DNA from: Macrostomum lignano
Taxonomy: Eukaryota
DNA: 64,000 bases
Direction of reading: 5' to 3'
Assembly: GCA_002269645.1 (NCBI GenBank)
Contig: NIVC01000690.1
Span: 310,001-374,000 of the forward strand
How positions within the stretch are numbered: the first letter of the stretch is position 1; the number at the start of each line of letters is the position of its first letter. Positions 4,701-64,000 of the stretch are shown in pieces. The notes beneath the pieces are model-generated. The model searched no databases, was not told the origin of the DNA, and saw only the letters and a program-made list of their open reading frames with translations. The position numbers and the translations under genes are program-made.

Positions 4701-4724
4701 ACGAAGGAGCCTGGAGTGGTTTAC

Positions 4725-14526: not shown

Positions 14527-17500
14527 CAGGGGCGGACCGAGGGGAAGGGGGGACAAGGGGGCCATGCCCCCCCCCTCAGCTCCGCCAAAAAAATCCTCAG
14601 ATGTATTGGTATCATGCAAAGTACATGTAAAACATTGGGGCCATCCAATTATAACTTAAGTTATATAGTGGTTATACAAGATGTAAAATAAAATTCAATT
14701 TAGTTGCTGTATGGCGGATGTATGGCCAGTGCACTGGGTAGAAGGGGGCAGGTCCTTCTATATTTGAATTGACCATATGAATATAGTCAACCGTAGTTCC
14801 GAAGTTCTAAAGTCCCCAACCCTGTCCCCTCCTGGTCTCCCGCAACATAAGACGGGAAAGAGTTAGTATTTAAACCTGCCAAGCATTTTCAAGAGGGCAT
14901 TATCAACATTTTATTAGATAAATGTACACAGCAGAATGTACACATACCCTCGTCCCATCCCCCTACCCTAGCCTTCCCTTCCCTCGAAGCCGGGACCCGG
15001 GGGTGCGCACCCACCCCTAAATACATTATTTAGGCTGCCCTCACCCTGCATTTAGAGGCACATTTCATTTTCATAAGGCACGCCATTACGCCTTCCACAT
15101 TATCACATATACAACGATTGTTTAGACTTCGTCTTCAATACATGTGTTTAACTTATTGTTGTCAATGACAATGTCTGCACGGATCGATTCGTTCTTCCCG
15201 CGTGAGGCAGAGACTTCGCACTGATGACTCCACTTCTGGCCAGGAACCAAAGGAGCCGGTTGAGTCAAGCAGTTGTCAGCAAGCGGTCAGCAAGCAGTCA
15301 GCAAGCAATGGTTCAACAAATGAGATAAGTCAACATAAAGAACTGGTTGAGGAGCCGGCAGTGCCTGCAGCACCCGGCACTCCTACTATTCTGCAATGTG
15401 ACCCCCCCATGTGACGATTTTGGACACGCGTTTGACCTACTGCGTGGCCCCAATTCTGTTGCCCTGGCCAGCCTCAGCTCGAAGGATCTGGTCAACCTGG
15501 TAGACAACTACTGGAAGCCTGACTGCGACACTTACGTCTTCCCAGCAACACAAAAGGGAAAATATCTGCGTCGACCCACTGGCTACCACTTCAAAACCTA
15601 CACTTGGCTGGCTTTCTCTGAAAAGCATCGGGGCTTGTTCTGCCGCTACTGCGTTGTCTTTGGACCAACATCTGTCCGAAGCATCCCAGTGGGTACCCTC
15701 ACAAGTTCCGCAAGTTTGACAAGCTAGTTGGTGACACCAGTGCATACCTGGTCAACCACAATGCCCTACTAATGCATCGCGAGTCGGAGAGAAAGTACAA
15801 GGCAGTGCAAGTGACGGCTAAGGATCCGGACATGAAATTTACATCCCTGCTTAACTCCGAAGCCGAGCGCCAGCGCAAGGCCAATCGACTGAAGCTCATC
15901 CAGATCGTCGATGCCGTCAAATTTCTGGCCAGCAACGGTCTGCCCTTCCGGGGTCATCGTGACGATGGTCCTGTCGATTTGAAGGATCCAGTGATGAACG
16001 AAGGTGTTTCCGTGCTCTGATTAAGTACTTGGCGAATTGTGGCAATGTGGTTCTGAAGGATCACATTGAAACCTGCTCTTCCAACGCGACGTACTTGTTA
16101 AAGAGAACCCAGAATGCTCTCATTGACTGCCTCAAGCAGTGCATCGTGGACAGAATCGTTGCGGATGCTCGAGAGGCTGTCTACTTTTCAATCATTGCTG
16201 ACGAGACCACGGACTGCTCCAACCATGAGCAGATCGCATTCTGCCTGCGGTTCTTTTCTACCCGGCGCCAACAAATTTCTGAGATGTTCGTTGGCTTCGA
16301 GCTCGCTCCTGATCTCAGGGGCAAAGCACTTGCCGCTCAGATTGTCTCCTTCATCCGAGGACTTGGACTGCAGCTGCAACATCTTGTTGACCAAGGCTAC
16401 GATGGTGCGTCAGCAATGGCTGGTGAATTCAATGGTGTCCAGAAGTTTGTTCGCGAGGAAGCCCCACTGGCAGCATATGTGCACTGCAGTTGTCACTGCC
16501 TCAATCTTGCTCTGGCAAAGTGCGCTCGTGTTCTCGAGATTGAAACTATCATCACTGCCATCAACGAGATTGCCGAGTTCTTCAACGACTCTCCAAAGCG
16601 CGCAGCTGTCCTTAAGCGTCATATTGAAGCCGTGTATCTGACGGCGTCGCACACGCGTCTGCAGAAGTATTGCGAAACGAGATGGGTGCAGCGTCACAAT
16701 TCAGTGGCCATTTTTGCGGAGCTGCTTGATGCAGTTTCGCCTGCTCTGGAGGAGATCAGCCACTGGCCTGCCGATCAAAATGAATACCTGGCTCGCTGTC
16801 ACCTTAAGACCCTTAAGGACTCATCCTTCTATCTTCCCTTCGTCGTTCTGCGCAAGGTTCTCGCAATCACCTCACCAGTGGCTGTTGCGCTACAGGATTC
16901 TTCGATTGATTTTCTGAAGTGCATTGCGTCATTGCGCAGCTGGACGACGATGTGTATCGCCGCTGGTTCGAGGAGGCTGAGAGGCTGTTTGGTGAAGACA
17001 TCACGATGCTGCAACTGTGTGGCCGACAGCGCAATCGCAACAATGTCCCCGCGGAGACTGCGGCTGTCTTCTACCGCCGCGCAGTCTTCTGCACCTACAT
17101 TGACGTCTATGCACCAGCCTCAAGAGTCGATTTGTGTCGCATGAAGCACAGGTTCTGCAACTGTGTGCTGTTGTGCCTAAGTTCAGTGTCACCTACAGCT
17201 TTGAGCAGATATGTGGCGCCGTTGAACTCTATGGCGCATTCCTCAGTGACGTCTATGCTGTTGAAGGTGAATACCTTCTGTGGGCTCGCAAGTGGAAGGA
17301 GGCCCAGTCGCAAGGCTTCAACCTGCCTGGAACAGCCACTGCTGCATTGGTCGACATTGGCAATGACCCAAACTACCGCAACATGCGCACACTGCTGCAA
17401 ATCTTTGCTACAATCCCGGTGACCACTGCCACATGCGAACGGGCCTTCAGTCACCTCCGTCTTTTGAAGACGTACCTTCGCTCAACGATGGCGGAGGAGA

Positions 17501-17979
17501 TACTGTCTGGGCTCTCCATAGCCCACATCCACCGTAGCATTGACATCCCCAGTGAGGAAGTTGTGGAGCGATATGCCAGGCAGAATCGCCGCCTTGATCG
17601 TTGACAATTGACACAGCTATTGTTGTGTAGTTTACTAGTCATGTAGTCCCGCTGCGTGAGTGCTTTAAGCTGTTAAAGTATACGATGTACATGTACAGTT
17701 GCGGGCGTGGGAGAAATGGCTAATTTCTACGGAATTGACAAATCTTTTTCAATAAATCAAGCCTCTATACGTCAAGAATGTCATCAAACCAAACAAGGCG
17801 ACTTGCTTGTTCATTACTAAGTACAGAAACATCATAAGTAGGTGTGAATTTTATGTAAGGAAGCCGATGTAGCATGTACAAAAGAATGGGCTTAGGATAC
17901 TGGTACCCTAATTACAGCTCTGGCCTGACCAGACGTGAGGCTTGCCCCCTCCCTCGGTAAAATCCTGGGTCCGCCCCTG
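14527..17979 (+). mobile_element. Full-length hAT DNA transposon
   Basis: 12-bp TIR CAGGGGCGGACC / GGTCCGCCCCTG and perfect 8-bp TSD GTGGTGGG (14519-14526, 17980-17987). Confidence 0.95.
15171..17604 (+). pseudogene. hAT transposase (TTF zinc finger, DUF4371/ZMYM1-like, hAT dimerisation domain), frameshifted
   Basis: WLAFSEKHRGLFCRYC, LPFRGHRDD, FSIIADETTD, QGYDGASAMAG, YVHCSCHCLNL, ETRWVQRH, IPVTTATCERAFSHLRLLKTYLRSTM, split over at least five ORFs. Confidence 0.93.
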
Positions 17980-27320: not shown

Positions 27321-28124
27321 AATACTTTCGTTTGAATTACTGGGTTGCCTAGCTAAAGAGCTGGAAGTGATTGTTCCTTGATTATCGAAGTCAGGTAATA
27401 AGGAACACATCAATAGATCTGCATGTTCGCGCATCTAAAGTTCAAAAACTGAACGAAGAGGAAAAAATAGGCCTTACGCAGGCGTAAAGAGCTTTTCGCG
27501 CGCCGTCATTGGTTAGCCTAGTTTATTGCGCAGCCATGAGGATTGGCTGTTCCTGGCTGCTTTTCTTGGCGCAACCAATTAGCTATCATGGAATGTGTTC
27601 CCATAGGTCTTGAACCTCTGGCATTGGATCCAATGATATGTACGAGCCATATAAAGTTTAAGAATGATTGCCCTTAATTACTTTAAACTTTGATTTTCAA
27701 AGCTCTTCAATAGCATATTACATCTGCAACATCTTTTGGAGATCGGACATCCGGATATCAGCAGCTTTCGTGAAACTTGAATATTTTTTCTAATTATTGG
27801 TTTTCTATTCATATAGACGTAGTCTAGGTCAAATAACATAATATCTCATTAGGTCTAACTTAATTTTATTAGCTTATAAACTCAAATAGCGAATTAGGAT
27901 CTTATAAGTCTAGTGATATTGTAGTGATCAAATATTCTAGCTGTATCAAATATTCTAGCTGTGCTCCAGGGATACTTGGCTAACCTAGTTAATATTTATT
28001 ACTGTGTAGGCTAGCGCATATACTTTGTATATAAACAAAATTTAGGCGAAGACTAGGCCGAATAGGTTTTTATAGTGGATAGTTGTTTTAGTTTTACAAG
28101 GTCTAAAATAACAGAGAGACAGGT

Positions 28125-30214
28125 ATGGCAGCAATTAGAAGCAGGAAGGAGAGAGTCCAAGCTGCAGTGGACAGCGTGATAGAAAGAATTCGCACTGGCA
28201 GAGTGCAATTATCGAGAAATTGCTCAAAAATTTTCCGTTCCTACCACCACCGTTTATGACAGAGCTCGCAGGCTGATGAACGGGCTGACGGTGACGGAAA
28301 AAAAATACTGCCAAGCGGTATTTGACGCAGGCCGAGGAGCGAGTCTTCTGCGATGCAATCAAGCAGGCAGCTCGACAGCAGGTGCCCATCACGAGGAAGA
28401 AGCTGCTCGAAATGGCAAGTGAGACCGTCCGCAACATTGGCGCTTCTAAAGAGGAGCGCTGCGGTTTGCGCGACGCCACCAAGGTAGGCCACAGTTTAAT
28501 ATCATATGAATCCTGCTTAATCTCAAACAAATCTCACTCTTAATTCTCAACCGCATGTCTATCTCTCAATCAGCACCTGTCTATCTCTCAATCAGCACCT
28601 GTCTATCTCTCAATCAGTCGCCAGTCTGTCTCCTCTCTATCAGCCGCCCGTCTATCTCTTTATCAGCCGCCCGTCAATCTCTTTATCAGCTGCCTGTCTG
28701 TCTCCTCTCTATCAGCGGCCTGTCTGTCTCCTCTCTATCAGCAGCCTGTCTGTCTCCTTTCTATCAGCCGCCCGTCTATCTCTTTATCAGCCGCCCGTCC
28801 ATCTCTTTATCAGCCACTCGTCCATCTCTTCATCAGCAGCCTGTCTGTCTCCTCTCTATCAGCGGCCTGTCTGTCTCCTCTCTATCAGCCGCCCGTCCAT
28901 CTCTTTATCAGCCGCTCGTCCATCTCTTTATCAGCCGCCCGTCCATCTCTTCATCAGCAGCCTGTCTGTCTCCTCTCTATCAGCGGCCTGTCTGTCTCCT
29001 CTCTATCAGCCACCCGTCCATCTCTTTATTAGCCGCCCGTCCATCTTTTCATCAGCAGCCTGTCTGTCTCCTCTCTATCAGCGGCCTGTCTGTCTCCTCT
29101 CTATCAGCCGCCCGTCTATCTCTTGTGACGAAATTGCGGTGCCGCAAGGATTGAAGTCTCACGCTGTGCTGGCAGAGAAAGGAATGGTAAACGTGGTGCA
29201 GAAGGTCCACGGCAGTGACCGGAAGCACACCACAGTTTTAATTTTTGTTCAATGCTCAGGTTCTCTATTGCCACCCCGCTTTGTTTTTTCCAGGAAAGAC
29301 GCAGCCTCGAATGGATTGTTTTCCTATTGATTGTCATTATTCTTTTTCTCCTAACGGGTGGATGAACACCGCTGGGTTTGAGGAATTTGTTAAAAAAACA
29401 TTCATGCCCTATCTAGAACAAAAGCGAATTCGCCGTCCTGTTGTCCTTTTCACAGATTTGCACGGCTCCAGATTTTCGCTGGAAGCTCTGGAGTACCTGA
29501 GGCAACAGAAGGTTGTACTGTACGGGCTGGTGCCGAACGCAACGCACGTCATGCAGCCTCTGGACCTCGCTGTTTTTCGCCCAGTAAAGATGGGATGGCG
29601 CGAGCTTCTCGCCGACAGGTCCCGGAGTGCTGCGATTGGAGACTCTGTCACCAGGCTGCGATTCGTGGAAATGCTCCGCGAGGTCCTGGCAGAGCGGGCT
29701 ACTTCGCAGAACATTATGGCTGGCTTCTTGAAAAGTGGAATTTTTCCGCGGAACCCTGATGCTTTAGCGTATGACAAGCTCTGCAAGCGGCAAGACCCGG
29801 CTCCCGCGCAGCAGGCAACAGGTGAGAATTGTGAATGCGTGCTAAAAGCCAGCAACACCGCCCCCACCTCTAGCCTTCCACAGAAAAATTTTAAATCAAC
29901 AAAGTGCCAAACAGCCTCAGGCTCTGTGGAGCGCTGCTTTGAGGATGTTCTTGGCGCCGCTAAGCTTCACGACTTGCAAACGAAGCCAGCGACGACCGAC
30001 AATGATCGTGCACTGCAGCAGCTGCTGCTGCGTCTGACCGGACAAATGAACTGCCAACAAATCAGTGACGAGCACGTGAGCTCCGACCAGCAGAGCACTG
30101 ACAGCGAGGACCAGATCGAGAGCAGCCCACTGCATCATCCCTCTCTTGATGAGGAGACCGTCGAGGCGGTTGAACCACAGAGTGAGGATTCGCTCGATGC
30201 AGAGAGGCAGTCAG
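28125..30214 (+). pseudogene. pogo-superfamily (Fot/Passer-like) DD35D transposase, frameshifted and interrupted by a minisatellite
   Basis: HTH YREIAQKFSVPTTTVYDR, second HTH LTQAEERVFCDAIK, then CDE, GWMNTAGF, TDLHGS and QPLD with 35 residues between the last two Asp. Confidence 0.9.
28555..29120. repeat. CT-rich minisatellite (CTATCAGC-based) inside the pogo transposase
   Basis: Direct reading. Confidence 0.95.
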
Positions 30215-30319
30215 GTGAGTAATCGGTAAATTTTAAGAATTTAAATTTAAATTAACGTATAGTATACAAGTACAAATTAACGTAACCGTAAATCACATTG
30301 TATACTACTTTGAGACCAT

Positions 30320-30900
30320 CTTCCCTCTCTCCCCTCTCCTTTTTCCCCTCTCCTCTCCCCTCTCCTCTCTCCTCTCCCCTCTCCTCCCACCCTCTCTTCT
30401 CTCCTCGATCTTCCCCTCTTCTCTCTCCTCTCTTCCCCTATTTCTCCTCTCCTCTCTCCCCTCTCCTCTCCTCTCTCCCCTCTCACCTCTACTCTCTTCT
30501 CTCTTCTCTCCCCTCTCCTCTCCTCTCTCCTCTCTCCTCTCCCCTCTCCTCCCACCCTCTTTTCTCTCCTCGATCTTCCCCTCTTCTCTCTCCTCTCTCC
30601 CCCTATTTCTCCTCTTTCCCCTCTCCTCTCCCCTCTCCACTCTCCTCTCCTCTCTCCCCTCTCTCCTCTACTCTCTTCTCTCTTCTCTCCCCTCTTCTTG
30701 ATCTCTCCCCTCTTCTCTCTCTCCCCTTCTTCTCCCCTCTCCTCTCCCTTCTCCCCCTCCTCTCCCTTCTCCCTCTCCTCCCCTTCTCCTCTCTCCTTTC
30801 CCTTCTGCCCTCTCCGCTCCCTTCTCCCCTCTCCTCTCCCTGCTCCCCTCCCCTCTCGTCTCATTTTCTCTCTCTCCATTCTCCTCTCTCATCTCCTGCC
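30320..30900. repeat. CT-rich low-complexity tract within the 800-nt intron 30215-31014
   Basis: Direct reading. Confidence 0.95.
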
Positions 30901-31014
30901 TATGTTCTAGATTTTATATCTGGTCATTAACCTAAAAGTTTGTCGACCCCATGATTAATATATTTTTTCTTCATGATTGCTAAATTTGAGCTACAAAATA
31001 TTTTTTCCGTTCAG

Positions 31015-32124
31015 GTGCCTTTTGCTCAATAAAGTCAGTATCACCCACAGCTCGAGAAACAGCCGAGTCGATCGCGTTCCCGATAAAGCGGAACCGGACT
31101 CCAGTTTCCGGCAAGAAAAGGAGAACATCCGTTTATCAGGACATTCCTCATCCTAACTTAACTAGCCGCTCTACCTTAGCCTTTTTCAGACTAAGACAGC
31201 AAAAGCGCCAGGCTGCTCTCGACGCCAAGGCCGCACGGCAGACTGCTCGGAAGCTTCGGGCGCAGCAGCGTCAGCGTCAAGGTTCCCGGCGACTGCAGTC
31301 GAAGCAGACGGTCGCATCTGAGCAACCGGTCGCCCAATCTGCCGTGCTGGACATGTCTCCCGCTTTAGGTCGGCTTGAGAGCAAGACGAAATCGTTGAAT
31401 TGCTTCTTAGGTAAGGCCGATTCTTTAGGAAATTGTTTTTTTTGACTCCGTCGGGCAGGTGCTCAGTTCCGAAGGCATCAATGCCGACGCCGACAGACTT
31501 CGATCAGACAGCTGCGCTTTCCTAGAGCAAAACGCCTATGTAAATGGTGAGAGTATCGTTAACTTTTTGGAAATGCCACTTAATGACTATTCACAAAATA
31601 TGAAACGTTCAAGTACCTATGCTGATCATCTTATTATCGTTGCATTAGCTAATTTCTTAGACAGGCCTTTTCAGATTTACCAGCCTGACCGTCCGGAGCC
31701 GGTAGTCATCATGCCAGAGGATCGCCACCCAGAAGGGCAACCAATCAAGCTGGCGCACATCCCAGAGCTGCACTATCTGCCGATGCTGCCGCTACCTCTG
31801 CCGGAGCTAAGTGTTGACTGCTGGGTGCTGGTTGCCGTGCAGGCAACTTGCAGAGGACGAAAAGCTTGGCAGCATTACCCGTGTCGAGTCATTCAACTCC
31901 AGGGCGATGGCCAAGTCATTGTCTCTGCCTGCACTCAGTGGGTGACAAACTGGATGGCTGGAGGTCAAAAGCCATTCATCTTCCCGGCCAAGAGCGACGA
32001 GTTCAGCGCACTGGTGAGTGAGGTCGCAGTTTTACCCAATCCCCATTTTCCTACGGGAAGGAATCCTGGATTCCTCTGGACCCGTGATCAGCTCATGAAT
32101 GCTCGCAGCCGCCTTATTCACTGA
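31015..32124 (+). CDS. Exon encoding basic linker, OTU-family cysteine protease domain and a C-terminal beta-rich domain; one +1 frameshift in a T8 run (31436-31443)
   Basis: Acceptor TTCCGTTCAG|31015; frame open to KADSLGNCFF, continuing DSVGQVL...YSQNMKRSSTYADHLIIVALANFL...IKLAHIPELHY after removing one T. Confidence 0.75.
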
Positions 32125-32424
32125 GTTGATCACTAGGCCTAGAAATTACGTCCCCATCGTTCTATCACATTTTATGAATTTTATGAACTCAAATGACCAT
32201 TCACTGCTCATTTAATTTCCTGCATTGCTCAACAATTGCCTCATTGCCTAACCTTCAAATCATAATGAATGCTAACTTCACTTTGACATTGCTTCTATTA
32301 AACATCACCATGCACAAGACTTTCATCAAAAGTTTAAAATCTAAAAAAACAAATAACTTACAAGTATTGCTTGCCTATTTTTCTTTAGCACATTCGCACT
32401 AAAATGACTGCTCACTGACTCAAG

Positions 32425-32810: not shown

Positions 32811-35800
32811 CTTTGCACTGTACTCAAAATTGAAAAACAAAAAAATTACAAGCATTGCTTGCCTATTTTGCTTCAGCACATTCGCACTAAAAATTACTGC
32901 ACACTGATTGCTCATTAACTTTCCTTGTCTTGATACATGCTATAATACAAATCTTAATATGTCTATAAATCTTAATATTGGTGACTTTTGACTTGGTGAC
33001 TCAGCAACAAGCATTTCCAACGCACATTAATTTAAATTTGGGTCAAAAGCCTATAATCAACAATGGGAAAACATACGAGCTAGATATAGTAGGTTTTAAT
33101 AAGCCTTTAAATTTCTTATGGAACTGTAATAATTTTACTTGTAATCCCAATAGAAACATTATACGTTCTTATACAAAACCATTGGATTTATTTTATGTGC
33201 CTGACTAATGTCAGAATTTTTTATAATTAAAGATGAACTTAAACTGATAGTGTGGAAGATATGCTTGCTGCTGCGGCAGGGAAGGGCCTCCTTCTCAGTT
33301 AACAAAAGCCCCTGCTAACGAAGCCAAGGAAGAAAGGTGACAATTAAAAAAATTAAAAATGCAACTGTCACTTTTTGAGTCACGACGAGAAGGAATTGAG
33401 CAATATCCTGGAAGCTATCAATGTCAAAAGGCCTAGCTTCTATCCAATTAAGAATGACAATACATGTAGTTACGTTTTTGTAGTGCCTTATAGGCTTAAT
33501 CATTGGCCAGCAATTTTAGTCATTTCAAATATTCTGAAGCATAAAAACAAACTCAATAAAGTTTGAGTGCATTTGAGTCTAATCTTAATATCTTTTGGCA
33601 TATTAATTACTGTGGAATATTTAAGGATGAGCTATTCTTGCTGGGATTATAATTATGTATTGCATATATGTATGTAGCATTTGCTTTTTGTATTTCTATT
33701 TTGCGTATACATGTACGAGCCTATATCTCTAGTTGGCCTCTGCGAGTTTGGCGCCTATAGTCTGTATACAATATTGCAAATATGTAAGTCAAGTCAGTAT
33801 TATAGCCTGGCTGCCAGGAGTTGGGGGCAAGAGGGAGCTGCGCCCCCACCCCCCAGGCTGGTAAAAGTATATAGCGCCCCATTGCCAGTGGGCTTGGCTC
33901 CCCCCCTCTCTTGCCACCAAGCTTGCTTATCTGCCCAATTAGCAATCCTGGCTATGCCCTTGTATTAAGTCCTTTACTCTATTATACTGCACACATATCT
34001 TAAACCTATAAAAAGGGTTAGCCGATTGCCTACCATTGATTGGGCCTATGTGGCTTAGTTTCGCACTCTCTTCAAAGATCTTCTTGAGCCTATATACATT
34101 AAGTTTAGACCTAGCCCTAGAGAAATGTTGGATTATGGCCTTTTTTGCAATGTGTATGTGTACAAAATGTATACAATACAAGTATTCAATATGTATACTA
34201 AGGGGCACAAGCGCACCCAATGAGCCTTTTTTAGGGAGGGTTTAGCGGCCCCATCTTGCTGGTTGTATCAAGGGGCCCAGTGATGACTCAGTGCTCAGAG
34301 TCATTAGACTCTGCTGACTCAGAATGAGGTGATTGTTTTCAACAAAATTTTAAGAACTTACAGCATTTTTCTCTGCATATTGGATTCATCTACTTGAAGT
34401 AGAAACATATGAGTATGGTAAGAAAAAAAGAAACAGAATATTTGCAGAATTTGTTTGCAGAAAAATGGACTTTTTTTACTATTTCTTGAATTTTTCGCTT
34501 TTTCTTCTTTAATGTTTAAAAATGACCAATAATATAGCAAGAAGAGCAGTAGACAAAACTAGTAGTACCTTGATTTTTTTTAAATCATGGTATAATGGTG
34601 AAATACAGGCAAATTTAGGAAGCGAAGGTCCCTTTGAAGAAATCTGAAATGAACAAAATATGAGGTCTGTTTAAAAAAAAACAGAATTTTTTACCTTTAT
34701 GAATGATTGCTTAATTAAAAAGTCTAAAATACATAGAAAAAATATAACTTTTTATCAATTTAGCATGAAAGAGTTCAAATAAATTGCAAAAAAGTAAAAA
34801 ATGACAATTTTTCTGTTCAATGGGGGGTACTATATTCAAATGCAGATAAACAATATTTTTCAGAATCTATCTATGCAAAAGTTATAACTTTTAGAAAGAG
34901 TATGAACTAATCTTTACAATGATATATATTTTAGAAAAAACAAACAAGAAATAAAAAAGTTATTCGTGTTCAAACACAAAAACCAAATGTCAGATACCCT
35001 GTTTGGTTTGAAGATACCCTAGAATCATCGTTCGGTTTTGATATAAAAACATCAATAACTTTCTTTCTACTTGTGCAATCAAGTAAAGCAAACATTCATT
35101 TGAAAGAAAAAATGTTTTAAACAACTTTGGGGTAGTTTCATTTCATTACATATAAAACTTTCTTTCCTATCTATGAGAGAATGTCAAAAAATGACACTTT
35201 CATGTTCGGTTGATGAGATCTTACCCTAGCACTTTTATTTTGAGGAATATCTCAAGTCTCAAGTCTAAGTCTAAACAAGGGGCGGAGTTAGGGGCTGCTT
35301 TTCTTCCCAAAATAGCTTGATAAAACAAGCATAATTGCGCCCTTAAAAACTTAAGTTTGCACCTCCTAAATGATTTTCTGCCCTCTACACGCATTTTATG
35401 CACTTTCTAACTTAAAAATTGTTGCCCCTAGAGTTGGACTGCCTTCCAAAATGAAATTCTAGATTTTACACTTCTTTAGACCAATGCATCTTATCTGGTT
35501 TTTACAAAAAGAAATGTTTAAACAATTTTAATTGGTTGTTTTTTTAAATTAGAAAGGACCAGTAATAGAAGTACCGGAAGTTACTTTTTAAAAAATTACC
35601 AGTACCAAAACAAGTGCTAGAAGTTACTTTCCTTGGAACTGGAAGTTACTTAACCAGAAGTTACTTTTTCAGAGTAACTTGCCCAACACTGCTAGTCCTG
35701 GACCTAGGTCCTAGGTCTCTAAAACTTGAAATGCATTTACTTTTACTAATTGACAGCCTTAGGCCTAGCCTTTGGCTTTGGGTTTTATCTATTAGTTAAT

Positions 35801-40735: not shown

Positions 40736-41290
40736 GTATCTAATTTAACGCACTTATTCTTCCCAGATTCTAAAGTGTTTGCTAAAGTCTGCTTTCTATG
40801 TTGTGAAATTTAGAGATGGTGGAGAAAATGATTTTTATTAAATTGTAAACTGTAGGAAGTTTTTAGTCTGTGGACTACCTACCCACAAACAACCCATTTT
40901 TAGTATACAGGAAGTGCTTGTTTTCCTACGTGAACTGTCTCGTCTTTAGACTTAAGCCATATTGACACTCATACATCAAATCACAGCCCCCTCTCTCTGG
41001 ATTGACGCAAACTAAACAACATTCAGCAAAAATTCATGCCTGGCATGAATCGCCTATCTATGCATAGTCCGCATAGATTTTGTAAAGAAAATAACTGGAG
41101 CGAGCGCACGTTGATTTTTATTTAGCAGCCGATGGAATAGGCGATCTGGAGAGCGGGGAGCTTGCTCATAGTTGTTCGGAATAGTCGTTCACACAAAAAC
41201 CAGTTCAACCGAAACAATTCTGTTTTGTTAAAGTGCTATATGTAGATCAGCTGTAGAGCGTGAGAGAAAGAGACAGACAGACAGACAGAC

Positions 41291-41337
<47 letters not shown>

Positions 41338-41379
41338 TGCAGAGACTCTCAACAGTGCAAGATATTCGCAAATCAGAGA

Positions 41380-42670
41380 CACCGAGGAAGCGCCGAAGTG
41401 CGTTCGAATCCGTGGGTGTCGGCCAGTCAGTGATTATTTGGATCTTCTTCTGGAGAGGTTTTATTCCTTCAGGAGTCACGCGATGGCCAAGGAAATCTAC
41501 CTCGGACTGAAAGAATTCGCACTTCTTCAAATGAACCTGTAGGCCGTGTGTTCTTAGGCGGTCCAAAACTTGTTCCAAATGCGAGTGGTGGTCCTCACGA
41601 GTCTTTGAGAATATCAGGACATCATCGATGTAAGAGATGACGAATGACAGTCCGTGAAAAACAGAGTCGATGAAGCGTTGAAATGTTTGTGCTGCATTCC
41701 TCAGGCCGAAGGGCATGCGTGTGTACTCGAACAATCCAAATGGTGTGGTGATAGCGGTTTTGCAAATATCCTCTTCGGCGACTGGAATTTGATGAAAGGC
41801 GCGAACAAGGTCTAACTTTGAAAACACAGTGCTTCCGTGTAGGTACCGGGTGAATGTTTGAATGTGTGGAACCGGATAGTTGTCCGGCTTTGTTCGTTTG
41901 TTCAATTCGCGATAGTCACCGCACGGACGCCAGCCAGCTCCCTTGGGTGCCATGTGGAGGGGTGACGCCCAAGCGCTTGAGGAAGGTCTGAGGTAGCCAG
42001 CATCGATTAGCTGCTGAAACTCCTGCTTTGCAGCCTGTAGTTTTGCAGGGTGCAGTTGCCGGGGTCGCAAGTGAATCGGTTGTCCACCACCAGTGTCTAG
42101 CCGGTGAACAGTGTCATGCTTGACCTCTGAAGCTGGCGGAAGGGCTCCGCCTTCAACGAAAGAAAAACAATCTGCAAACTTTGTCAACAGCGTACTTGTC
42201 CGAGAATCCAGGTTGGGTGGCAGTTCTACCGACACAGTAACCGGGCCACAATGAACATTTGAAATTGACAAGGTAACAGTAGACAGTCCTGTTTCTGAGT
42301 CTCGAACGTGTTTGCGCTGACAATCGACAACTAACCCATGGTGAGCCAAGAAATCGTAACCAATGATGGGTTTCACCACTGACGCCACGAGGAAGGTCCA
42401 CTGGAAGGCGCGACGCAAACCGCGGATTGAGACATCCAGTAGGACCGACCCGCGAACTGGTATGGCGGCTCCGGTGGCAGTAATTAAACGAACGTTTGTA
42501 TCTTGAACGAGTGCGTTAACAAGGTGAGGTGGAACAATAGAAACCGAGGCTCCGGTATCCACAAGAAACTTGCTGTAGGTATTGTTGATTTTAACATCTA
42601 ACTCCAAACAGGTGGTCGATGGTATCTCGGCACTGCGCACCGCGACCTCGGTCGCAGTGCGATTTAGTTT
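41380..42670 (-). CDS. pol: Gypsy Pol (aspartic protease plus RT), truncated; -1 frame relative to gag
   Basis: [68 protein letters not shown]. Confidence 0.95.
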
Positions 42671-42673
42671 TCC
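42637..42673 (-). other. -1 programmed ribosomal frameshift signal
   Basis: G GAA AAC (42673-42667), 6-nt spacer TAAATC, 10-bp hairpin GCACTGCGAC-CGAG-GTCGCGGTGC. Confidence 0.75.
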
Positions 42674-43569
42674 GGCTGTCGAGAAGGTGATGATGAACGC
42701 GACTGAGATGGCGTTTTTTCATTGGGATGCAGCACTCGGATCGGACGCGAGCTGTCCTTGGGAAACTGGCACCACGGGCGACACGACCGAGCACGGCGTC
42801 CATAGTAGAGGTGTGAGCGGCAAACGACGGGGCGTTGGCCAGGCTTAAATGGGTCTGTTCCAGTGGGCTTACCAGGTGCTTGTCGGCGTGGAGCTTGCTC
42901 AAAGCGCTGTTGGGGTGTCCGATCTGCACCGGCCTGCTGAATTGGGCAAACTGTCGCTGGCGATGGAGAGCTAAGGCCTCTGACGACCAACATCGAGTCA
43001 GCAATCTCGGAAATTTGCTGGGATGACTGCTGTTGGAATCCCGACAGTGCGATACGAAGGTCCTGTGGAAGACAGCGCATCAGAGTGGCCTTGAGGAGTT
43101 CCTCGTCGGGCTGTATCTGGCACTGCTCCATCTTGCTCCGGAGTTTGCGCATGAAGATTGATGGCTTGTCTCCTCCGAGGTCCGAGACTTGCAATACTTC
43201 CGAAACCTTCTCCTGCTTGGACTTTTGCAGAGTCGATGTAATTGCTGTTTTCAGTTGTTCGTACTGTTTTGGAGTCTGAGCGGACAAGTGCAGAGCCGCG
43301 ATATCCTCCGGTAGATGAGAGACTAGGTGGTAAAATTTGGCGGTCTCGTTGGTCACCCTGTTGAGCATAAACTGGGCCTCCAGCGTGAGGAACCATGCTT
43401 CCGGGTTGTTGCGATAGAAGATTGGCAGCTTCAGGTGGGCCAGGGAGACTGAAGCGGTGTCGGCGGCGTTTCCTACTGCATGTGTAACCACTGGTGCGGC
43501 CGAACTTGGTGCGGCTTGCGTGGTTGTAGGTGGTGTAGGAGCGGAATTGTTGCTTGCACTGTCCGTCAT
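42664..43569 (-). CDS. gag: Gypsy Gag
   Basis: [36 protein letters not shown], zinc-knuckle-like [18 protein letters not shown]; intact 301 aa. Confidence 0.9.
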
Positions 43570-46995: not shown

Positions 46996-47099
46996 CTATC
47001 TGGGCTGCTCGCGCATGACAGTCAGGTAGTGACCGGTCGAACCGGGTGGCAATCTGAGGTAGCCACGAGAGCTGGTCGGTGGTTGCTGCTGATGAGCCC

Positions 47100-47142
<43 letters not shown>

Positions 47143-49084
47143 ATAGTACAGCTGCTGAGACGGCGGAGTGTCGACGTTGTAGCTGCGACTTCGCTGACTC
47201 ATCGGAGAAGCCCGACCGCCAGACGGTGGCCGGTAGTCCGAGCGGTCTGTCTCAAATCTCTTCAACCGACCGTGCAGGTGTTGCTGCGTCTGCAACTGCG
47301 GTTGCTCATCCTGCTCGTCCACTTTCAAGAACTCGTTGAAAATAGCATTGGTGCGCTCGTCAATGCTGTAGTCGCGTTGAAGACGCGTACTTTGACGCCG
47401 CTGCGGCTGCTGCTGGTGCATTTCACCTTGGTTGAAAAATTTATCAAAGACCGCAGCCTTGCTGTCACCGCTATCGTCTAGATGTGCTTCGATTTCCATT
47501 CGGAGCTGCTCTTCTTCGTTGTCAAGCTCCAGAGGATGATGGCGCGGCTGCGGCTGCGGCTGCGGCTGCGGGCTGAACCGGCGTCGGTCCTCGCTGAACT
47601 TCCGTCGTCTGGCTGACGCTCTGGAATCCGGCGGCACTGCCGGGTCAGCCTGGGTCACGATTAGCGTTGGCGACCTCTGGCACTGCTGCTGCCGCTTGGC
47701 CTGCTGCAGCACCTGCTGCTGGCTTTTCACCAGGGCGGGCTTCGCTGGCAGGGACCTCTGCCGCTGCTGCTGCTGCTGCAGGTGCTGCGGTGACAGCGAG
47801 ACGGCTCCTGGTGGCAGCAGTGGCGAGTTCTGCTTCTCAACCAGCGGATGCTGGCACAACTGGCTTTGCTGAGGGGTCTGCCTAGGCGACGACGATAGTC
47901 GAAGAGAATGCTGGCCGATCAAAACGGCTGGCAGGGTTTTTCCGACTCCGACGACGCCGCTAGCGCCTTGAGACTCCACGCTCTTGTAGCCGGAGTCCCG
48001 CTGCATCTGCTGCAGCTTCCGGCTGCCGCTGCTGGAACCGCCGCCGCCTCCGCCGCCGCCTGCGCCGCCACCAGTTGAGTCCGTGTGCGAGTCGGCGCCA
48101 GTTGATGACTCAAAACTAGTCGTAGTGTTGTGACCTGGCCCGCTAGAGTTGGACCGCGAGGTCGGCTCCACCTCCGGATCGGTTGTCGCCGTCTCGAAGC
48201 TGTCCAGACTCGTCTCGCCGCTCGCGTTGGCCTTCTGGCTGCGCCGAGCGAGGCCGGCCTGCCGAAAGTGCTGACGTCGCGTCTCGGTCTCCGGTGCGAT
48301 CGCGGCCTCCGGTGCTACAGCTGCTGGCTCGCCGCCGCCGGCCGCCGCTTCGAAGCTGCAGCGCAGGCGCCAGAGTTGTCGAGGATCGCGTCCTGTTGTG
48401 TCAGACACCGCAGCAACCAGTGGAAGCCGCATTCGATGGTGATGCAGCTGCTGCTGCTGCTGCCAGCCGACGCCCAACGGCCCCGGAGGAGCCTCCTGGT
48501 AGTAAACTGGCAAGTAGCGCCGCTGCTGAGCAAAATAGCTGCCCGCTCCGATGAGCTCGTCATCGGGGATCTCGTCCAGCATTAGCTGATTATCCTGGAC
48601 CTCCTCCAGACTGCCAGTGTCGTTATATCGCACTACACTTGGCGGACTGTCACGCCGCTCCTTGGCGTTGGGATTCTCGATGCACTCAGCGTCGAAACTG
48701 AACGCCTTTCGGCTGTTTGGTGAATTACTGGGCGCGGCCAGCAGCGACGCAGAAGGATGACGGCCAGCTTGCTGCTGCTGCTGCTGCTGCTGTGGAGAAG
48801 ACAAAGACGCAGTTCGCTCCGAAGTGGCTCTCGGTACGCCAGCTCGACGACTTCGACCAACGACGACGTTGTACTGCTCGGTCGACGGTCCGGGATGAAG
48901 CGGCAGCGGCGAAGTCGACGTCGACGACATGTTGGCGACCAGGGTTGGGGTCGGCGTCGGCGTCTGGGTAGGCGTCGGAGTCGATGTCGGACGCTGATGC
49001 GGCGCCGGAAGCTGCTCTGCGACGCCGCGCGACGGAACTCGAGGCGACAGCCGATAATGCGGCTGCGACAACTGCTGGCGAGCG
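46996..49084 (-). CDS. CBARP: Large terminal exon of a CBARP/BARP-like protein (voltage-gated Ca channel beta-subunit-associated regulator)
   Basis: Ordered motifs RQLWRLRCSFE, RKLQQMQRDSGYKSVE and QRDYSIDERTNAIFNEFL match remembered vertebrate CBARP motifs RDLWSLRASLE, RRLLQMDSGYASIE, RRDYSIDEKTDALFHEFL; acceptor CTTGCATCAG|49084, phase 2. Symbol is by recalled similarity only. Confidence 0.65.
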
Positions 49085-49151
49085 CTGATGCAAGGGTTCA
49101 AAAATTTCAAATAAATGATTGATTGTTTTACATTTACACTATTTTAATCGG

Positions 49152-49483
49152 GAGCACTAGAGGCGCCAGCACCAGAGGCGCCAGCACCAGAGGCGCCAGC
49201 ACCAGAGGCGCCAGCACCAGAGGCGCCAGCACCAGAGGCGCCAGCACCAGAGGCGCCAGCACCAGAGGCGCCAGCACCAGAGGCGCCAGCACCAGAGGCG
49301 CCAGCAACAGAGGCGCCAGCACCAGAGGCGCCAGCACCAGAGGCGCCAGCACCAGAGGCGCCAGCACCAGAGGCGCAAGCACCAGAGGCGCCAGCACCAG
49401 AGGCGCCAGCACCAGAGGCGCCAGCACCAGAGGCGCCAGCACCAGAGGCGCCAGCACCAGAGGCGCCAGCACCAGAGGCGCCT
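49152..49483. repeat. 15-bp minisatellite (ACCAGAGGCGCCAGC)n
   Basis: Direct reading; intronic. Confidence 0.97.
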
Positions 49484-50019
49484 GCACATAGGGGGAGGGG
49501 CACCATAGTTTTTGGCAGGCCCATTGACGGAGTCGTGCCCGCACCCTCACTTACCCCACTGGCTACGCCCCTAGCCAAAGTTATAACTAAAGTACAGAAT
49601 GTACGGAATTAGCCGCAACACTTTTGGCTGATGAAGACTCGCAGATTTTGTTTGAGCTTTGCTGCCTGTTTACCTTTGTCAGAAAACTTCTGTCCGTTTG
49701 TACGGAGAAAGCAGAATGAAAGCGCAAACATAAAAGTGAGAATGAAGTCTGAAATAGGCGGGGAAGCTTGGCATCTGAGCGGAATTATGGCCACTGTTTG
49801 TTCAGATTGCGTTGGGAAATTTCCTTTGACAAAACTTTCCCTCGTGTTTACTATGACACGCAATGCCAGTTGGGAAGCAGGGATTGCTACAAGAGGAAGT
49901 GGCGGATGTGATTGAGAAATAGTCGAGTGAGTGGGCCGGGAATTGAAACAAAGGCAGAATAAACAATGAGCTTCCTGCTTCGGGTGAAAAAGTTTTGAAT
50001 GATGCCTAAGAGGGTGAGC

Positions 50020-50610
50020 TAGTCTGAGAGAGATAGAGGGTGAGATAATGTGAGATAAGATGAGAGATTGAGGGTGAGATAGGGAGAAAGATAAGGGTGA
50101 GATAAGATAGGTGATAAGGGTAAGATAAGGTGAGAGATAGCGGGTGAGACAAGATGAGAGACAGGGTGAGATAAGGTGAGAGATAAAGGGTGAGATAAGG
50201 TGAGAGATAGCGGGTGAGACAAGATGAGAGACAGGGTGAGATAAGGTGAGAGATAAAGGGTGAGATAAGATGAGAGATAGCGGGTGAGACAAGATGAGAG
50301 ACAGGGTGAGATAAGGTGAGAGATAAAGGGTGAGATAAGGTGAGAGATAAAGGGTGAGATAAGGTGAGAGATAAAGGGTGAGATAAGGTGAGAGATGGAG
50401 AGAGATAAAGGGTCAGATATCGTAGAGGGTGGGATAAGGTAAGAGATAGATGGTGAGATAGAGAGAAAGGTAGTGGGTAAGAGAGCGAGAGATAAGGGTG
50501 AGATAAGATAAGAGACAGGTTGAGATAAGATGAGATAGAGGGTGAGATAAGGTGAGATATAAAGGGTGAGATAAGGTGAGAGAGTGAGAGATAGAGGTTG
50601 AGCTAGGGTA
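50020..50610. repeat. GA-rich satellite (GGTGAGATAA-based)
   Basis: Direct reading; intronic. Confidence 0.9.
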
Positions 50611-51261: not shown

Positions 51262-54200
51262 GGAGAGATAGAATGAGAATAGAATAAAATAGAATCAGAT
51301 CAGAATCAGATTGAGAGAGATAGAATGGGGAGAGATAGATTGGGTGAGATAGAATGGGGAGAGATAGATTGGGTGAGATAGAATGGGGAGAGATAGAATG
51401 GGGAGAGATAGAATGAAGAGAAATAGAATGGGGAGAGATAGAATGAAGAGAGATAGAATGTGGAGAGATAGAAAGAAGAGAGATAGAATGGGGAGAGATA
51501 GAATGAAGAGAGATAGAATGTGGAGAGATAGAATGGAGAGAGATAGAATGGGGAGAGATAGAATGGAGAGAAATAGAATGGGGAGAGATAGAATGAGAAT
51601 AGAATAAGATAGAATCAGATCAGAATCAGATTGAGAGAGATAGAATGGGGAGAGATAGATTGGGTGAGATAGAATGGGGAGAGATAGATTGGGTGAGATA
51701 GAATGGGGAGAGATAGAATGGGGAGAGATAGAATGAAGAGAAATAGAATGGGGAGAGATAGAATGAAGAGAGATAGAATGTGGAGAGATAGAAAGAAGAG
51801 AGATAGAATGGGGAGAGATAGAATGAAGAGAGATAGAATGTGGAGAGATAGAATGGAGAGAGATAGAATGGGGAGAGATAGAATGGAGAGAAATAGAATG
51901 GGGAGAGATAGAATGTAGAGAGATAGAATGGGAGAGATAGAATGCGGATCGAGATAGAATGAAGAGAGATAGAATGTGGAGAGATAGAATGGAGAGAGAT
52001 AGAATGGGGAGAGATAGAATAGGAGAAATAGAATGGGAGAGATCGAATGCGGAGAGATAGAATTAAGAGAGATAGAATGGGGACAGATAGACTGGAGAGA
52101 GATAGAATGGGGAGAGATAGGATGGAGAGAGATAGAATGCGGAGAGATAGAATTAAGAGAGATAGAATGAGGAGAGATAGAATGGAGAGAGATAGAATGA
52201 AGAGAGATAGAATCAGATCAGAATCAGATTGAGTGAGATAGAATGGGGAGAGATAGATTGGGTGAGATAGAATGGGGAGAGATAGAATGTGGAGAGATAG
52301 AATGGAGAGAGATAGAATGGGGAGAGATAGAATGAAGAGAGATAGAATGGGGAGGAGATAGAATGGAGAGAGATAGAATGCGGAGAGATAGAATTAAGAG
52401 AGATAGAATGGGGAGAGATAAAATGGGAGAGATAGAATGGGAGAGATAGAATGAAGAGAGATAGAATGGGGAGAGATAGAATGGAGAGAGATAGAATGAA
52501 GAGAGATAGAATGTGGAGAGATAGAATGGAGAGAGATAGAATGGGGAGAGATAGAATAGGAGAAATAGAATAGGAGAGATAGAATGCGGAGAGATAGAAT
52601 TAGGAGAGATAGAATGGGGAGAGATAGAATAGGAGAAATAGAATGGGAGAGATAGAATGCGGAGAGATAGAATTAAGAGAGATAGAATGGGGAGAGATAG
52701 AATGGAGAGAGATAGAATGGGGAGAGATAGAATAGGAGAAATAGAATGGGGAGAGATAGAATGGGGAGAGATAGAATGAAGAGAGATAGAATGTGGAGAG
52801 ATAGAATGGAGAGAGATAGAATGGGGAGAGATAGAATTAAGAGAGATAGAATGGGGAGAGATAGAATGGAGAGAGATAGAATGGGGAGAGATAGAATGGA
52901 GAGAGATAGAATGGGGAGAGATAGAATGAAGAGAGATAGAATGTGGAGAGATAGAATGAAGAGAGATATAATGGGGAGAGATAGAATGAAGAGAGATAGA
53001 ATGGGGAGAGATAGAATGGAGAGAGATAGAATGGGGAGAGATAGAATGGAGAGAAATAGAATGGGGAGAGATAGAATGTAGAGAGATAGAATGGGAGAGA
53101 TAGAATGGAGAGAGATAGAATGAATGGGAGAGATAGAATGGAGAAAGATAGAATGGGGAGAGATAGAATAGGAGAAATAGAATGGGAGAGATAGAATGCG
53201 GAGAGATAGAATTAAGAGAGATAGAATGGGGAGAGATAGAATGGAGAGAGATAGAATGGGGAGAGATAGGATGGAGAGAGATAGAATGCGGAGAGATAGA
53301 ATTAAGAGAGATAGAATGAGGAGAGATAGAATGGAGAGAGATAGAATGAAGAGAGATAGAATCAGATCAGAATCAGATTGAGTGAGATAGAATGGGGAGA
53401 GATAGATTGGGTGAGATAGAATGGGGAGAGATAGAATGTGGAGAGATAGAATGGAGAGAGATAGAATGGGGAGAGATAGAATGAAGAGAGATAGAATGGG
53501 GAGAGATAGAATGGAGAGAGATAGAATGCGGAGAGATAGAATTAAGAGAGATAGAATGGGGAGAGATAAAATGGGAGAGATAGAATGGGAGAGATAGAAT
53601 GAAGAGAGATAGAATGGGGAGAGATAGAATGGAGAGAGATAGAATGAAGAGAGATAGAATGTGGAGAGATAGAATGGAGAGAGATAGAATGGGGAGAGAT
53701 AGAATAGGAGAAATAGAATAGGAGAGATAGAATGCGGAGAGATAGAATTAGGAGAGATAGAATGGGGAGAGATAGAATAGGAGAAATAGAATGGGAGAGA
53801 TAGAATGCGGAGAGATAGAATTAAGAGAGATAGAATGGGGAGAGATAGAATGGAGAGAGATAGAATGGGGAGAGATAGAATAGGAGAAATAGAATGGGGA
53901 GAGATAGAATGGGGAGAGATAGAATGAAGAGAGATAGAATGTGGAGAGATAGAATGGAGAGAGATAGAATGGGGAGAGATAGAATGGAGAGAGATAGAAT
54001 GGGGAGAGATAGAATGGAGAGAGAGATAGAATGAATGGAGAGATAGAATGGGAGAGATAGAATGAAGAGAGATAGAATGTGGAGAGATAGAATGAAGAGA
54101 GATATAATGGGGAGAGATAGAATGAAGAGAGATAGAATGGGGAGAGATAGAATGGAGAGAGATAGAATGGGGAGAGATAGAATGTAGGGAGATAGAATGG

Positions 54201-55700
54201 GAGAGATAGAATGCGGATCGAGAGAATTAAGAGAGATAGAATGGGGAGAGATAGAATGGAGAGAGATAGAATGGGGAGAGATAGAATGGAGATAGATAGA
54301 ATGGGGAGAGATAGAATGGGAGAGATAGAATGGGAGAGATAGAATGAAGAGAGATAGAATGGGAGAGATAGAATGCAGAGAGATAGAATTAAGAGAGATA
54401 GAATGGGGAGAGACAGAATGGAGAGAGATAGAATGTGGAAAGATAGAATGGAGAGAGATAGAATGGGGAGAGATAGAATAGGAGAAATAGAATGGGAGAG
54501 ATAGAATGCTTAGAGATAGAATTAAGAGAAATAGAATGGGGAGAGATAGAATGTGGAAAGATAGAATGGAGAGAGATAGAATGGGGAGAGATAGAATAGG
54601 AGAAATAGAATGGGGAGAGATAGAATGGGGAGAGATAGAATGAAGAGAGATAGAGTGTGGAGAGATAGAATTAAGAGAGATAGAATGGGGAGAGATAGAA
54701 TGGAGAGAGATAGAATGGGGAGAGATAGAATGGAGAGAGATAGAATGCGGAGAGATAGAATTAAGAGAGATAGAATGGGGAGAGATAGAATGGAGAGAGA
54801 TAGAATGGGGAGAGATAGAATGGAGATAGATAGAATGGGGAGAGATAGAATGAAGAGAGATAGAATGTGGAGAGATAGAATGAAGAGAGATATAATGGGG
54901 AGAGATAGAATGAAGAGAGATAGAATGGGGAGAGATAGAATGGAGAGAGATAGAATGGGGAGAGATAGAATGTAGGGAGATAGAATGGGAGAGATAGAAT
55001 GCGGATCGAGATAGAATTAAGAGAGATAGAATGGGGAGAGATAGAATGGAGAGAGATAGAATGGGGAGAGATAGAATGGAGAGAGATAGAATGGGGAGAG
55101 ATAGAATGGGAGAGATAGAATGGGAGAGATAGAATGAAGAGAGATAGAATGGGGAGAGACAGAATGGAGAGAGATAGAATGTGGAAAGATAGAATGGAGA
55201 GAGATAGAATGGGGAGAGATAGAATAGGAGAAATAGAATGGGAGAGATAGAATGCGGAGAGATAGAATTAAGAGAAATAGAATGGGGAGAGATAGAATGA
55301 AAAGAGATAGAATGTGGAGAGATAGAATGGAGAGAGATAGAATGGGGAGAGATAGAATAGGAGAAATAGAATGGGAGAGATAGAATGCGGAGAGATAGAA
55401 TGGAGAGATAGAATGGAGAGAGATAGAATAGGAGAAATAGAATGGGAGAGATAGAATGCGGAGAGATAGAATGAAGAGAGATAGAATGGGGAGAGATAGA
55501 ATGAAGAGAGATAGAGTGGGGAGAGATAGAATGAAGAGAGATAGAATGGGGAGAGATAGAATGAAGAGAGATAGAATGGGGAGAGATAGAATTAAGAGAG
55601 ATAGAATGTGGAGAGATAGAATGAAGAGAGATAGAATGGGGAGAGATAGAATGAAGAGAGATAGAATGGGGAGAGATAGAATGGGGAGAGACAGAATGGC
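51262..55700. repeat. 4.4-kb 15-bp minisatellite (AGATAGAATGGGGAG)n with higher-order duplications
   Basis: Direct reading; marker blocks recur at offsets 320 and 1149. Confidence 0.98.
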
Positions 55701-55814
55701 AGAGAAAGAACAGGAGAGATAGAACGTGAAAGGTTAGAACGGGATGCGAATGGGGATACAAAACTACAACAAATGATAACCACCGAGAAAACTACGGCAC
55801 AATGGGTGACTCAC

Positions 55815-55930: not shown

Positions 55931-55964
55931 CTGTGGGCGAGTGGGAAATGTTGAAGGCAAAAAG

Positions 55965-63970: not shown

Positions 63971-64000
63971 AGTGATAGTGCTAATGCGGTCACTAGAATG

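Follow-up and report, generated by a model that had tools for sequence, protein, structure and literature searches.

The window analysed here comprises 64,000 nucleotides (nt) of Macrostomum lignano DNA (NCBI GenBank assembly GCA_002269645.1, contig NIVC01000690.1, positions 310,001 to 374,000 of the forward strand), and all positions given below are those of this window. Its region 28125-32124 on the + strand very probably represents a defective copy of a cut-and-paste transposon of the pogo superfamily (DD35D type), in whose ancestor a single protein fused the transposase to an OTU cysteine-protease domain. The gene starts with an ATG at 28125 (+) and is, in three-frame translation, legible in pieces only. 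Exon 1 (28125..28483) encodes a psq-like helix-turn-helix (HTH) followed by the first part of a Tc5/CENP-B-type HTH, as recognised by translation, by comparison with the HTH_psq profile and by tblastn to an independent copy of the element, named L001 and described below. It is followed by the presumed remnant of a first intron plus a minisatellite (28484..29123), delimited by Tandem Repeats Finder and by a gap in the homology to L001, and by the DDE_1 catalytic core (DD35D) with an acidic linker behind it (29124..30214; Pfam DDE_1 and identity to L001). A putative second intron of 800 nt in phase 1 (30215..31014), reading GTGAGT...TTTTTTCCGTTCAG, is outlined by its sequence, by a tandem array and by a breakpoint in homology. 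The first part of exon 3 (31015..31403), aligned by tblastn to residues 593-732 of L001, specifies a conserved motif and then a basic, probably helical or nuclear-localisation-signal-like segment. The OTU domain itself occupies 31404..31790, being supported by Pfam OTU, by sequence matches in the PDB, by AlphaFold and by Foldseek, and a C-terminal domain of approximately 100 residues (31813..32124), recognised by its identity to L001 and by codon-position identities, ends at the TGA at 32122-32124.

After frame corrections, the transposase part scores 40.9 bits against Pfam DDE_1 (cut-off 22). The codons of the catalytic Asp residues are located at 29127, 29455 and 29563, and all three are kept in the window copy; a preliminary description of this DNA, made from the sequence alone, had designated the enzyme DD35D, and 35 residues do separate the second and third catalytic Asp. 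The core is 70% identical to that of L001 at the amino-acid level over 217 codons, and exon 1 is 57% identical to L001 residues 59-117 by tblastn. In the DNA-binding region the HTH_psq match of the window reaches 15.1 bits, below the cut-off of 20.4, and the Tc5 domain is shortened by a deletion; the counterpart of this region in L001 matches HTH_Tnp_Tc5 above the cut-off, with 30.3 bits. Of the three profiles that had been suggested for a HMMER comparison (OTU, DDE_1 and HTH_psq), the first two thus pass and the third remains under its cut-off in the window.

The preliminary description had placed the end of the transposase open reading frame (ORF) at a phase 1 donor, TCA G/GTGAGT (the slash marking the junction), and the beginning of the downstream exon at a phase 1 acceptor at 31015, separated by 800 nt. 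Both sites are found in these places, the DDE ORF (29245-30222) having its last exon base at 30214 and reaching a TAA at 30220, and the acceptor reading TTCCGTTCAG/G with 31015 as the first exon base, so that exactly 800 nt lie in between. The joined frame, estimated earlier at about 140 codons without a stop, contains upon reading of the sequence an open stretch of 142 codons at 31015-31442, which the ORF list lacks, which extends up to ...KADSLGNCFF and is homologous to the L001 protein by tblastn. Taking one T out of the T8 run at 31436-31443 connects this stretch, as proposed, to ORF 31459-32124 (+), which carries the OTU core and the C-terminal domain in one frame, and the candidate catalytic Cys and His codons are then found at 31434 and 31771 (LHY). 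The expectation that a T7 run was the original state agrees with L001, which has TGT TTC TTT GAG against TGT TTT TTT T GAC in the window.

With that single T removed, the translation scores 30.5 bits against Pfam OTU (PF02338; gathering cut-off 23.3), and the L001 homologue, in which this region needs no correction, scores 32.8 bits. In a sequence search of the PDB the GNCFF loop of the window aligns with the GSCFF loop of wMelOTU from Wolbachia, and its LAHIPELHY strand with the VSYHRNIHY strand of OTUD5, so the candidate catalytic Cys and His fall in the motifs matched to these two enzymes; both residues are kept in L001, and across 11 aligned related OTU domains the Cys does not vary and the His is almost constant. 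An AlphaFold2 model of the OTU part plus the C-terminal domain, built from a 12-sequence alignment, has a predicted local distance difference test (pLDDT) score of approximately 90-97 across residues 1-150, being the OTU part. The best PDB matches of this model in Foldseek are OTUD5/DUBA, Otu2, wMelOTU, OTUD3 and OTUD1, all of which are OTU deubiquitinases, with a probability of 1.00, target template modelling (TM) scores of 0.6-0.84 and E = 3e-8 to 1e-6. The assignment to the OTU family, based on profiles and on the modelled fold, is solid, and isopeptidase activity is only predicted. The preliminary description had regarded D-x3-N-C as the OTU catalytic arrangement, which does not hold: the usual spacing in OTU enzymes is D-G-N-C, that of the window is unusual, and L001 reads RYGNC at this place and lacks the Asp.

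Behind the OTU domain, the C-terminal domain follows the pattern CWVLVAV...YPCRVI...KPFIFP..D...TGR..GFLW and is 52-54% identical between the window and L001 (its protein P0002). It has no match in Pfam and no credible match in PHROGs, and its models are of low confidence, with a pLDDT of 35-55 both within the larger model and when modelled alone. The earlier proposal that this segment resembles the end of other pogo-like proteins found no significant support. P0032, a protein of 757 amino acids (aa) with psq, Tc5 and DDE_1 domains, does end in a module that looks similar by eye (FVIFKY...FFPGQI...FWKWP..D...PP...SRG), and weak PHD-like fingers are located at the ends of P0033 and P0035; in a comparison of the C-terminal domain with P0032, BLASTP produced no alignment and hhalign aligned the PFIFP..D..P..TGR motif at E = 0.14. 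The C-terminal module of P0032, used as the query of a word-indexed protein search, returned no matches. The apparent link to other pogo proteins is a lead and not a result. Ahead of the OTU domain, a 24-residue motif, RRTSVYQDIPHPNLTSRSTLAFFR, encoded at 31119-31190, has hardly changed between the window and L001, whereas the linker around it is only 34-39% identical. Loosely, this motif has the appearance of a PCNA-binding (PIP-box) sequence, with a spacing that is not canonical.

The independent copy was recovered by searching 1.84 billion representative proteins exhaustively with HMMER; ORF 31459-32124, used as the query, gave just two close relatives, P0001 (644 aa, 49% identity over the OTU domain) and P0002 (77 aa, 54% identity over the C-terminal domain). 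Both are located on the same contig of 3191 bp, L001, assembled from run SRR30276804. P0001 is one unbroken ORF of 644 codons which contains DDE_1 as well as OTU; upstream of it lies the ORF of a Tc5 HTH, divided from it by no more than a single nonsense codon, TAA as against CAA in the window, and downstream of it, after a one-base frameshift, lies P0002. The repaired L001 product of 969 aa matches HTH_Tnp_Tc5 (30.3 bits), DDE_1 (47.5 bits) and OTU (32.8 bits), all of which pass the cut-offs, and it aligns by tblastn with the window in five collinear blocks (28301-28483, 29124-29303, 29275-30162, 31020-31442 and 31438-32106), at approximately 50% protein identity and with both proteins terminating at an equal position. 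Because one ORF of the window spans the OTU and C-terminal domains, and one ORF of L001 spans DDE_1 and OTU, the ancestral protein held all of these domains. This protein would have had a length of about 900-970 aa and the order psq and Tc5/CENP-B HTHs, DDE_1, long acidic linker, TSVYQxIPHxNLTSRSTLxFFR plus basic segment, OTU, and C-terminal domain of about 100 aa. The main proposal of the preliminary description, an in-frame fusion of a pogo DD35D transposase with an OTU domain, is accordingly upheld by the domain order of L001 and by the P0001 ORF; its placing of the OTU domain inside the element and not beside it is upheld by the collinear L001 and by the ORF which OTU and C-terminal domain share in the window, and, as regards other copies that might lack the downstream exon, L001 does carry the OTU and C-terminal domains.

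Selection on the separate domains was assessed by aligning the window and L001 codon by codon and by determining identity at codon positions 1/2/3. These identities are 0.74/0.85/0.41 for DDE_1 (nonsynonymous difference 0.19), 0.62/0.74/0.43 for OTU (0.33) and 0.68/0.67/0.42 for the C-terminal domain (0.32); in the linkers, with a nonsynonymous difference of 0.45-0.47, identity by codon position is not informative. Synonymous sites are saturated between the two copies, the proportion that differs being approximately 0.7-0.8. The excess of changes at third codon positions shows that the OTU and C-terminal domains were under purifying selection, both having been kept as protein, along with the transposase, while the two lineages diverged.

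The window copy itself has suffered four frameshifts, being near 28205, in A8 at 28298-28305, in T6 at 29284-29289 and in T8 at 31436-31443. The 2560 coding bases include four homopolymer runs of at least 6 nt (the fourth at 29392-29398), three of which are frameshifted, and the approximately 850 corrected codons contain no in-frame stop, which points to a recent death of the copy. In addition, 69 codons are missing, corresponding to L001 residues 118-186, which begin where the Tc5 HTH ends and stop shortly ahead of the first catalytic Asp; their place is taken by 28484-29123. The frameshifts upstream and this replacement, all within the transposase, had not been seen in the preliminary description. 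As its sequence reads, the window copy cannot express the fusion protein. Two explanations would fit, a young copy in which slippage has produced the indels, and a (long-read) assembly in which some homopolymer lengths are wrong; the loss of 69 codons is not a homopolymer artefact.

A number of observations weigh against the interpretation of this locus as a copy of a mobile element which encodes a spliced and catalytically competent fusion. L001 is defective as well, with its nonsense codon, its frameshift and a change of the second catalytic Asp to Asn. In the OTU domain, the second residue behind the His is neither Asp nor Asn (Leu in the window, Met in L001), leaving the third catalytic residue not assignable, and the Asp upstream of the Cys is not conserved, occupying position -5 in the window and having no counterpart in L001; the related OTU clade is variable too at the positions of the third catalytic residue. 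L001 is either a spliced transcript or an intronless relative, which is no proof of splicing. In the flanks of this one decayed copy no inverted repeat above 10-14 nt connects the two sides, and none of the 34,944 TA-TA pairs has at least 11/12 or at least 17/24 complementary bases, so that the TA-flanked terminal inverted repeats (TIRs) suggested earlier as boundaries of the element were not found by any of three methods. No second copy exists within the 64-kb window, and none was found among metagenome contigs, using patterns from the OTU side and from the DDE side, or among viral contigs; a word-indexed protein search with the corrected OTU part gave no matches in a collection that is without proteins of the source genome. 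L001 is the sole related contig across the protein, metagenome and viral collections, and mobility in multiple copies is thus unsupported.

As regards the ends, these may have been eroded or may lie beyond the range that was searched. A 10-nt match of TAGTGATCAA and TTGATCACTA (27922 and 32126) was rejected as a TIR, being at chance level (E = 4.2). Short tandem repeats are present approximately 150-200 bp 5' of the start codon in both copies (L001 1-135, about 7 units of 19-20 bp; window 27916-27962, 2.7 units of 18 bp), with unit sequences that are unrelated; these might be subterminal transposase-binding repeats, a putative role. A 75-bp direct repeat (32345-32418 and 32833-32907; 89% identical) brackets a CT-rich array just past the stop codon of the element and may be a separate small element that carries repeats.

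The question of whether the 800-nt interval was ever spliced concerns one part of this reading, the fusion itself being real in either case. The interval 30215-31014 opens with a perfect CAG/GTGAGT and closes with a polypyrimidine tract and CAG/G; a stop follows 2 codons past the 30214 donor, the downstream frame opens 22 nt ahead of the acceptor, and homology to L001, which is continuous there, picks up 2 codons after the acceptor at 31015. Inside the interval a CT-rich array (30324-30897), which gives spurious ORFs of 200-210 aa on both strands, is flanked on each side by approximately 110 nt of AT-rich unique sequence. At the other interruption, homology to L001 ends exactly at 28483 and restarts exactly at 29124, and the breakpoint reads AAG/GTAGGC. 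Both departures of the window from L001 (28483/4 and 30214/5) therefore start with AG/GTRAG, and AGGTRAG occurs 22 times on the + strand of the 64 kb, or about 3.4e-4 per site. The interval 28484-29123 includes a minisatellite (28547-29124) with periods of 23, 26 and 121 bp according to Tandem Repeats Finder, yielding a spurious ORF of 199 aa; as a clean intron this interval was rejected, since the one CAG close by does not fit the phase and the loss of 69 codons would remain in any event. The two arrays, at 28547-29124 and 30324-30897, are both C/T-rich, measure approximately 575 bp each and are each located shortly 3' of a donor-like GT.

An alternative to splicing is that the 800 nt at 30215-31014 arose later, as a repeat-rich insertion or expansion in a once continuous ORF, and were never spliced. 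Such an origin would be in keeping with the L001 ORF being continuous and intronless at both sites, with the destruction of coding sequence by the other array of the window copy, where no working acceptor is present, with a window linker that is about 43 residues shorter than the L001 linker at 30214/31015, and with the abundance of expanding minisatellites in this genome. It would leave as coincidences the perfect donor, the polypyrimidine tract with its CAG/G and the unique flanks of about 110 nt, as well as the restoration of both frame and homology within 2 codons when 30215-31014 is taken out, and a second breakpoint that likewise reads AAG/GTAGG although AGGTRAG is rare on this strand. 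On balance a later insertion is rather unlikely, and 30215-31014 is probably a spliceosomal intron in the lineage of the window copy. The two interruptions together are read as two introns of that lineage, in which the gene would have had at least these, one after the K codon at 28483 and one at 30214/31015, each of which would later have been filled by C/T-rich tandem arrays, the first having been truncated afterwards along with part of the next exon.

A different explanation would remove the element from the mobile fraction of the genome, the locus being the pseudogene, or a misassembled copy, of a host gene that goes back to a pogo transposase and gained an OTU domain, a domestication as in POGK, POGZ and the TIGD genes, and L001 being the spliced mRNA of a homologue from another species. 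Domestication would account for the lack of terminal repeats, the presence of introns, the single copy within 64 kb, the extreme rarity of relatives in the databases and the long-term purifying selection; the Asn at the second catalytic position of L001 has its parallel in the domesticated POGK (DN35D; PMC7386202), and the three of four frameshifts that fall in homopolymer runs could be assembly errors. Against this stand the disabled state of both copies, the window by a 69-codon deletion which is no homopolymer artefact and L001 by a nonsense codon and a frameshift, the position of the locus amid other dead transposable elements, and the retention of all three catalytic Asp residues in the window copy, and we consider domestication improbable. 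Finally, it is scarcely credible that a dead pogo transposase came to lie by chance upstream of a gene or element that bears OTU but is unrelated to it, with a coincidental in-frame junction, for even though a random donor-acceptor pair is frame-compatible in one of three cases, the window is a patchwork of transposon fragments and the closest OTU relatives outside P0001/L001 sit in unrelated architectures, L001 repeats the order DDE_1, linker motif, OTU and C-terminal domain with DDE_1 and OTU in one ORF, it does so at approximately 50% protein identity and saturated synonymous divergence, and the TSVYQ linker motif is common to both copies, by which comparison of sequences chance adjacency is ruled out, short of L001 having been assembled as a chimera.

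The window is animal-like in character, and the surroundings of the locus are rich in minisatellites and in dead transposable elements (Penelope-like, hAT, LTR and non-LTR debris; LTR, long terminal repeat). They comprise a Penelope-like ORF with RVT_1 and a weak GIY-YIG (1008-2432, +), a fragment of a reverse transcriptase (RVT_1; 4313-4762, +), a frameshifted hAT transposase with DUF4371 and a hAT dimerisation domain (16029-17604, +), and the gag (DUF7041), protease and reverse transcriptase of an LTR retrotransposon (41228-43569, -). A Gln/Ser/Pro-rich ORF of 704 codons at 46996-49110 (-), which has no Pfam match, may represent a large host-gene exon or a low-complexity tract open by chance. 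The long ORFs at 49134-50292, 53821-56648, 59276-61066, 61638-62630 and 63202-63993, of at most 646 aa, are translated minisatellites only, and GC skew is extreme, up to 0.95, at 50-56 kb.

Among known systems, the transposase resembles the pogo superfamily (Passer and Fot-like families, with Tigger and pogoR as relatives) in its DDE_1 core, its Asp as third catalytic residue, its spacing of 35 and its psq and Tc5/CENP-B HTHs; DD35D has been reported for the Passer and Fot-like pogo families (Gao et al. 2020, PMC7386202). P0032-P0035, at 28-31% identity, are ordinary psq, Tc5 and DDE_1 transposases, none of the four having an OTU domain. The present element differs from the superfamily by the OTU domain and the conserved C-terminal domain behind the core and by the lack of detectable TIRs or TA duplications. 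In two large surveys of pogo diversity the terms OTU, protease and ubiquitin do not occur, and full-text literature searches yielded no report in which OTU is joined with pogo, Tigger or DDE_1.

OTU domains have been documented in Helitrons, and the closest precedent for the architecture is Ginger1, a group of cut-and-paste transposons of invertebrates, often with 1-4 introns, whose DDE transposase bears a C-terminal OTU or Ulp1 domain (Bao, Kapitonov and Jurka 2010, PMC2836005). The preliminary description had noted OTU domains in Helitrons and had been aware of none on a pogo transposase; no pogo case was found here either, while the transposase-OTU fusions of Ginger1 make the finding less unprecedented than it had seemed. 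The likeness to Ginger1 consists of a DDE transposase and a C-terminal OTU domain in one protein, and P0020, one of the OTU relatives, combines a Ginger-like rve domain with OTU; unlike the present enzyme, that of Ginger1 is Gypsy-integrase-like (rve) and not of the DDE_1/pogo type, and the OTU domain of the element is not nearer to the Ginger-like P0020 (36.6 bits) than to the non-transposon OTU of P0003 (55 bits). Helitrons and Helentrons are alike in having a transposon protein with a papain-fold deubiquitinase domain (OTU or VTD), and differ by their rolling-circle mode and by a Rep/helicase protein with no DDE transposase. According to Erven et al. (2022, PMC9741609), the VTD domains of Helitrons cleave ubiquitin and NEDD8 probes, a role in shielding transposition proteins from degradation is suggested, and no OTU domain of a transposon has ever been assayed. 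With cellular and viral OTU enzymes (OTUD5/DUBA, OTUD3, OTUD1, Otu2, wMelOTU and nairovirus vOTU) the element shares the fold, the GNCFF Cys and the HY His, at an identity of merely 14-20% in the Foldseek alignments, with neither Asp nor Asn at His+2 and with the OTU domain embedded in a transposase.

Among the 30 OTU relatives that were found, OTU and DDE_1 occur together in P0001 alone. The nearest non-transposon relatives are P0009, P0011, P0013, P0019 and P0023, whose immune-like partner domains in Pfam are Mab-21 and HEPN_DZIP3 with a STAND NTPase; by eye, the nearest non-transposon relatives also have kinase-like and GTPase-like regions and TPR-like repeats. Apart from P0001 and the Ginger-like P0020, the OTU relatives examined have either immune-like partners or no partner domain, and in P0006 an OTU domain is not seen at all. 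The short OTU fragments P0004-P0030 were rejected as members of the family, as they belong to a general OTU clade of the type WGDH...HY.SL.P.

In the mechanism that is proposed for the intact element, the HTH pair would bind the element ends, the DDE core would excise and reinsert the element, and the tethered OTU domain would strip ubiquitin or a ubiquitin-like modifier from the transposase itself, from chromatin, or from repair factors at the site of transposition. The outcome would be a more stable transposase or an influence on repair, in line with proposals made for the OTU/Ulp1 domains of Ginger1 and for the deubiquitinase domains of Helitrons. The role put forward in the preliminary description, to counter ubiquitin-dependent silencing or turnover, is likewise a hypothesis. 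That the locus derives from a recently active pogo lineage which needed its tethered OTU domain for transposition, with the transposase being protected or ubiquitin marks on chromatin or repair factors being rewritten, is a tentative and rather doubtful proposal.

For annotation purposes, the locus is an ordinary dead copy of a transposon. Fusions of a transposon protein with a deubiquitinase are already known, the new part being, as far as could be found, the pogo-type class of the host element. If true, eukaryotic DNA transposons would have recruited a deubiquitinase independently for a third time, Helitrons and Ginger1 being the two known cases, and the IS630-Tc1-mariner-pogo group would have its first example. 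Elements of this group are generally small, and transposition of Passer has been assayed in cultured cells, so a consensus element might permit a direct test of a transposon-borne OTU domain. Deubiquitinase or Ulp1-type proteases have been acquired by Helitrons, Ginger1 and Mutator-like elements, and also by herpesviruses. Their recurrence in unrelated classes points to ubiquitin signalling as a general meeting ground on which mobile DNA and its host either clash or cooperate, and the pogo example would carry this pattern into the IS630-Tc1-mariner-pogo group.

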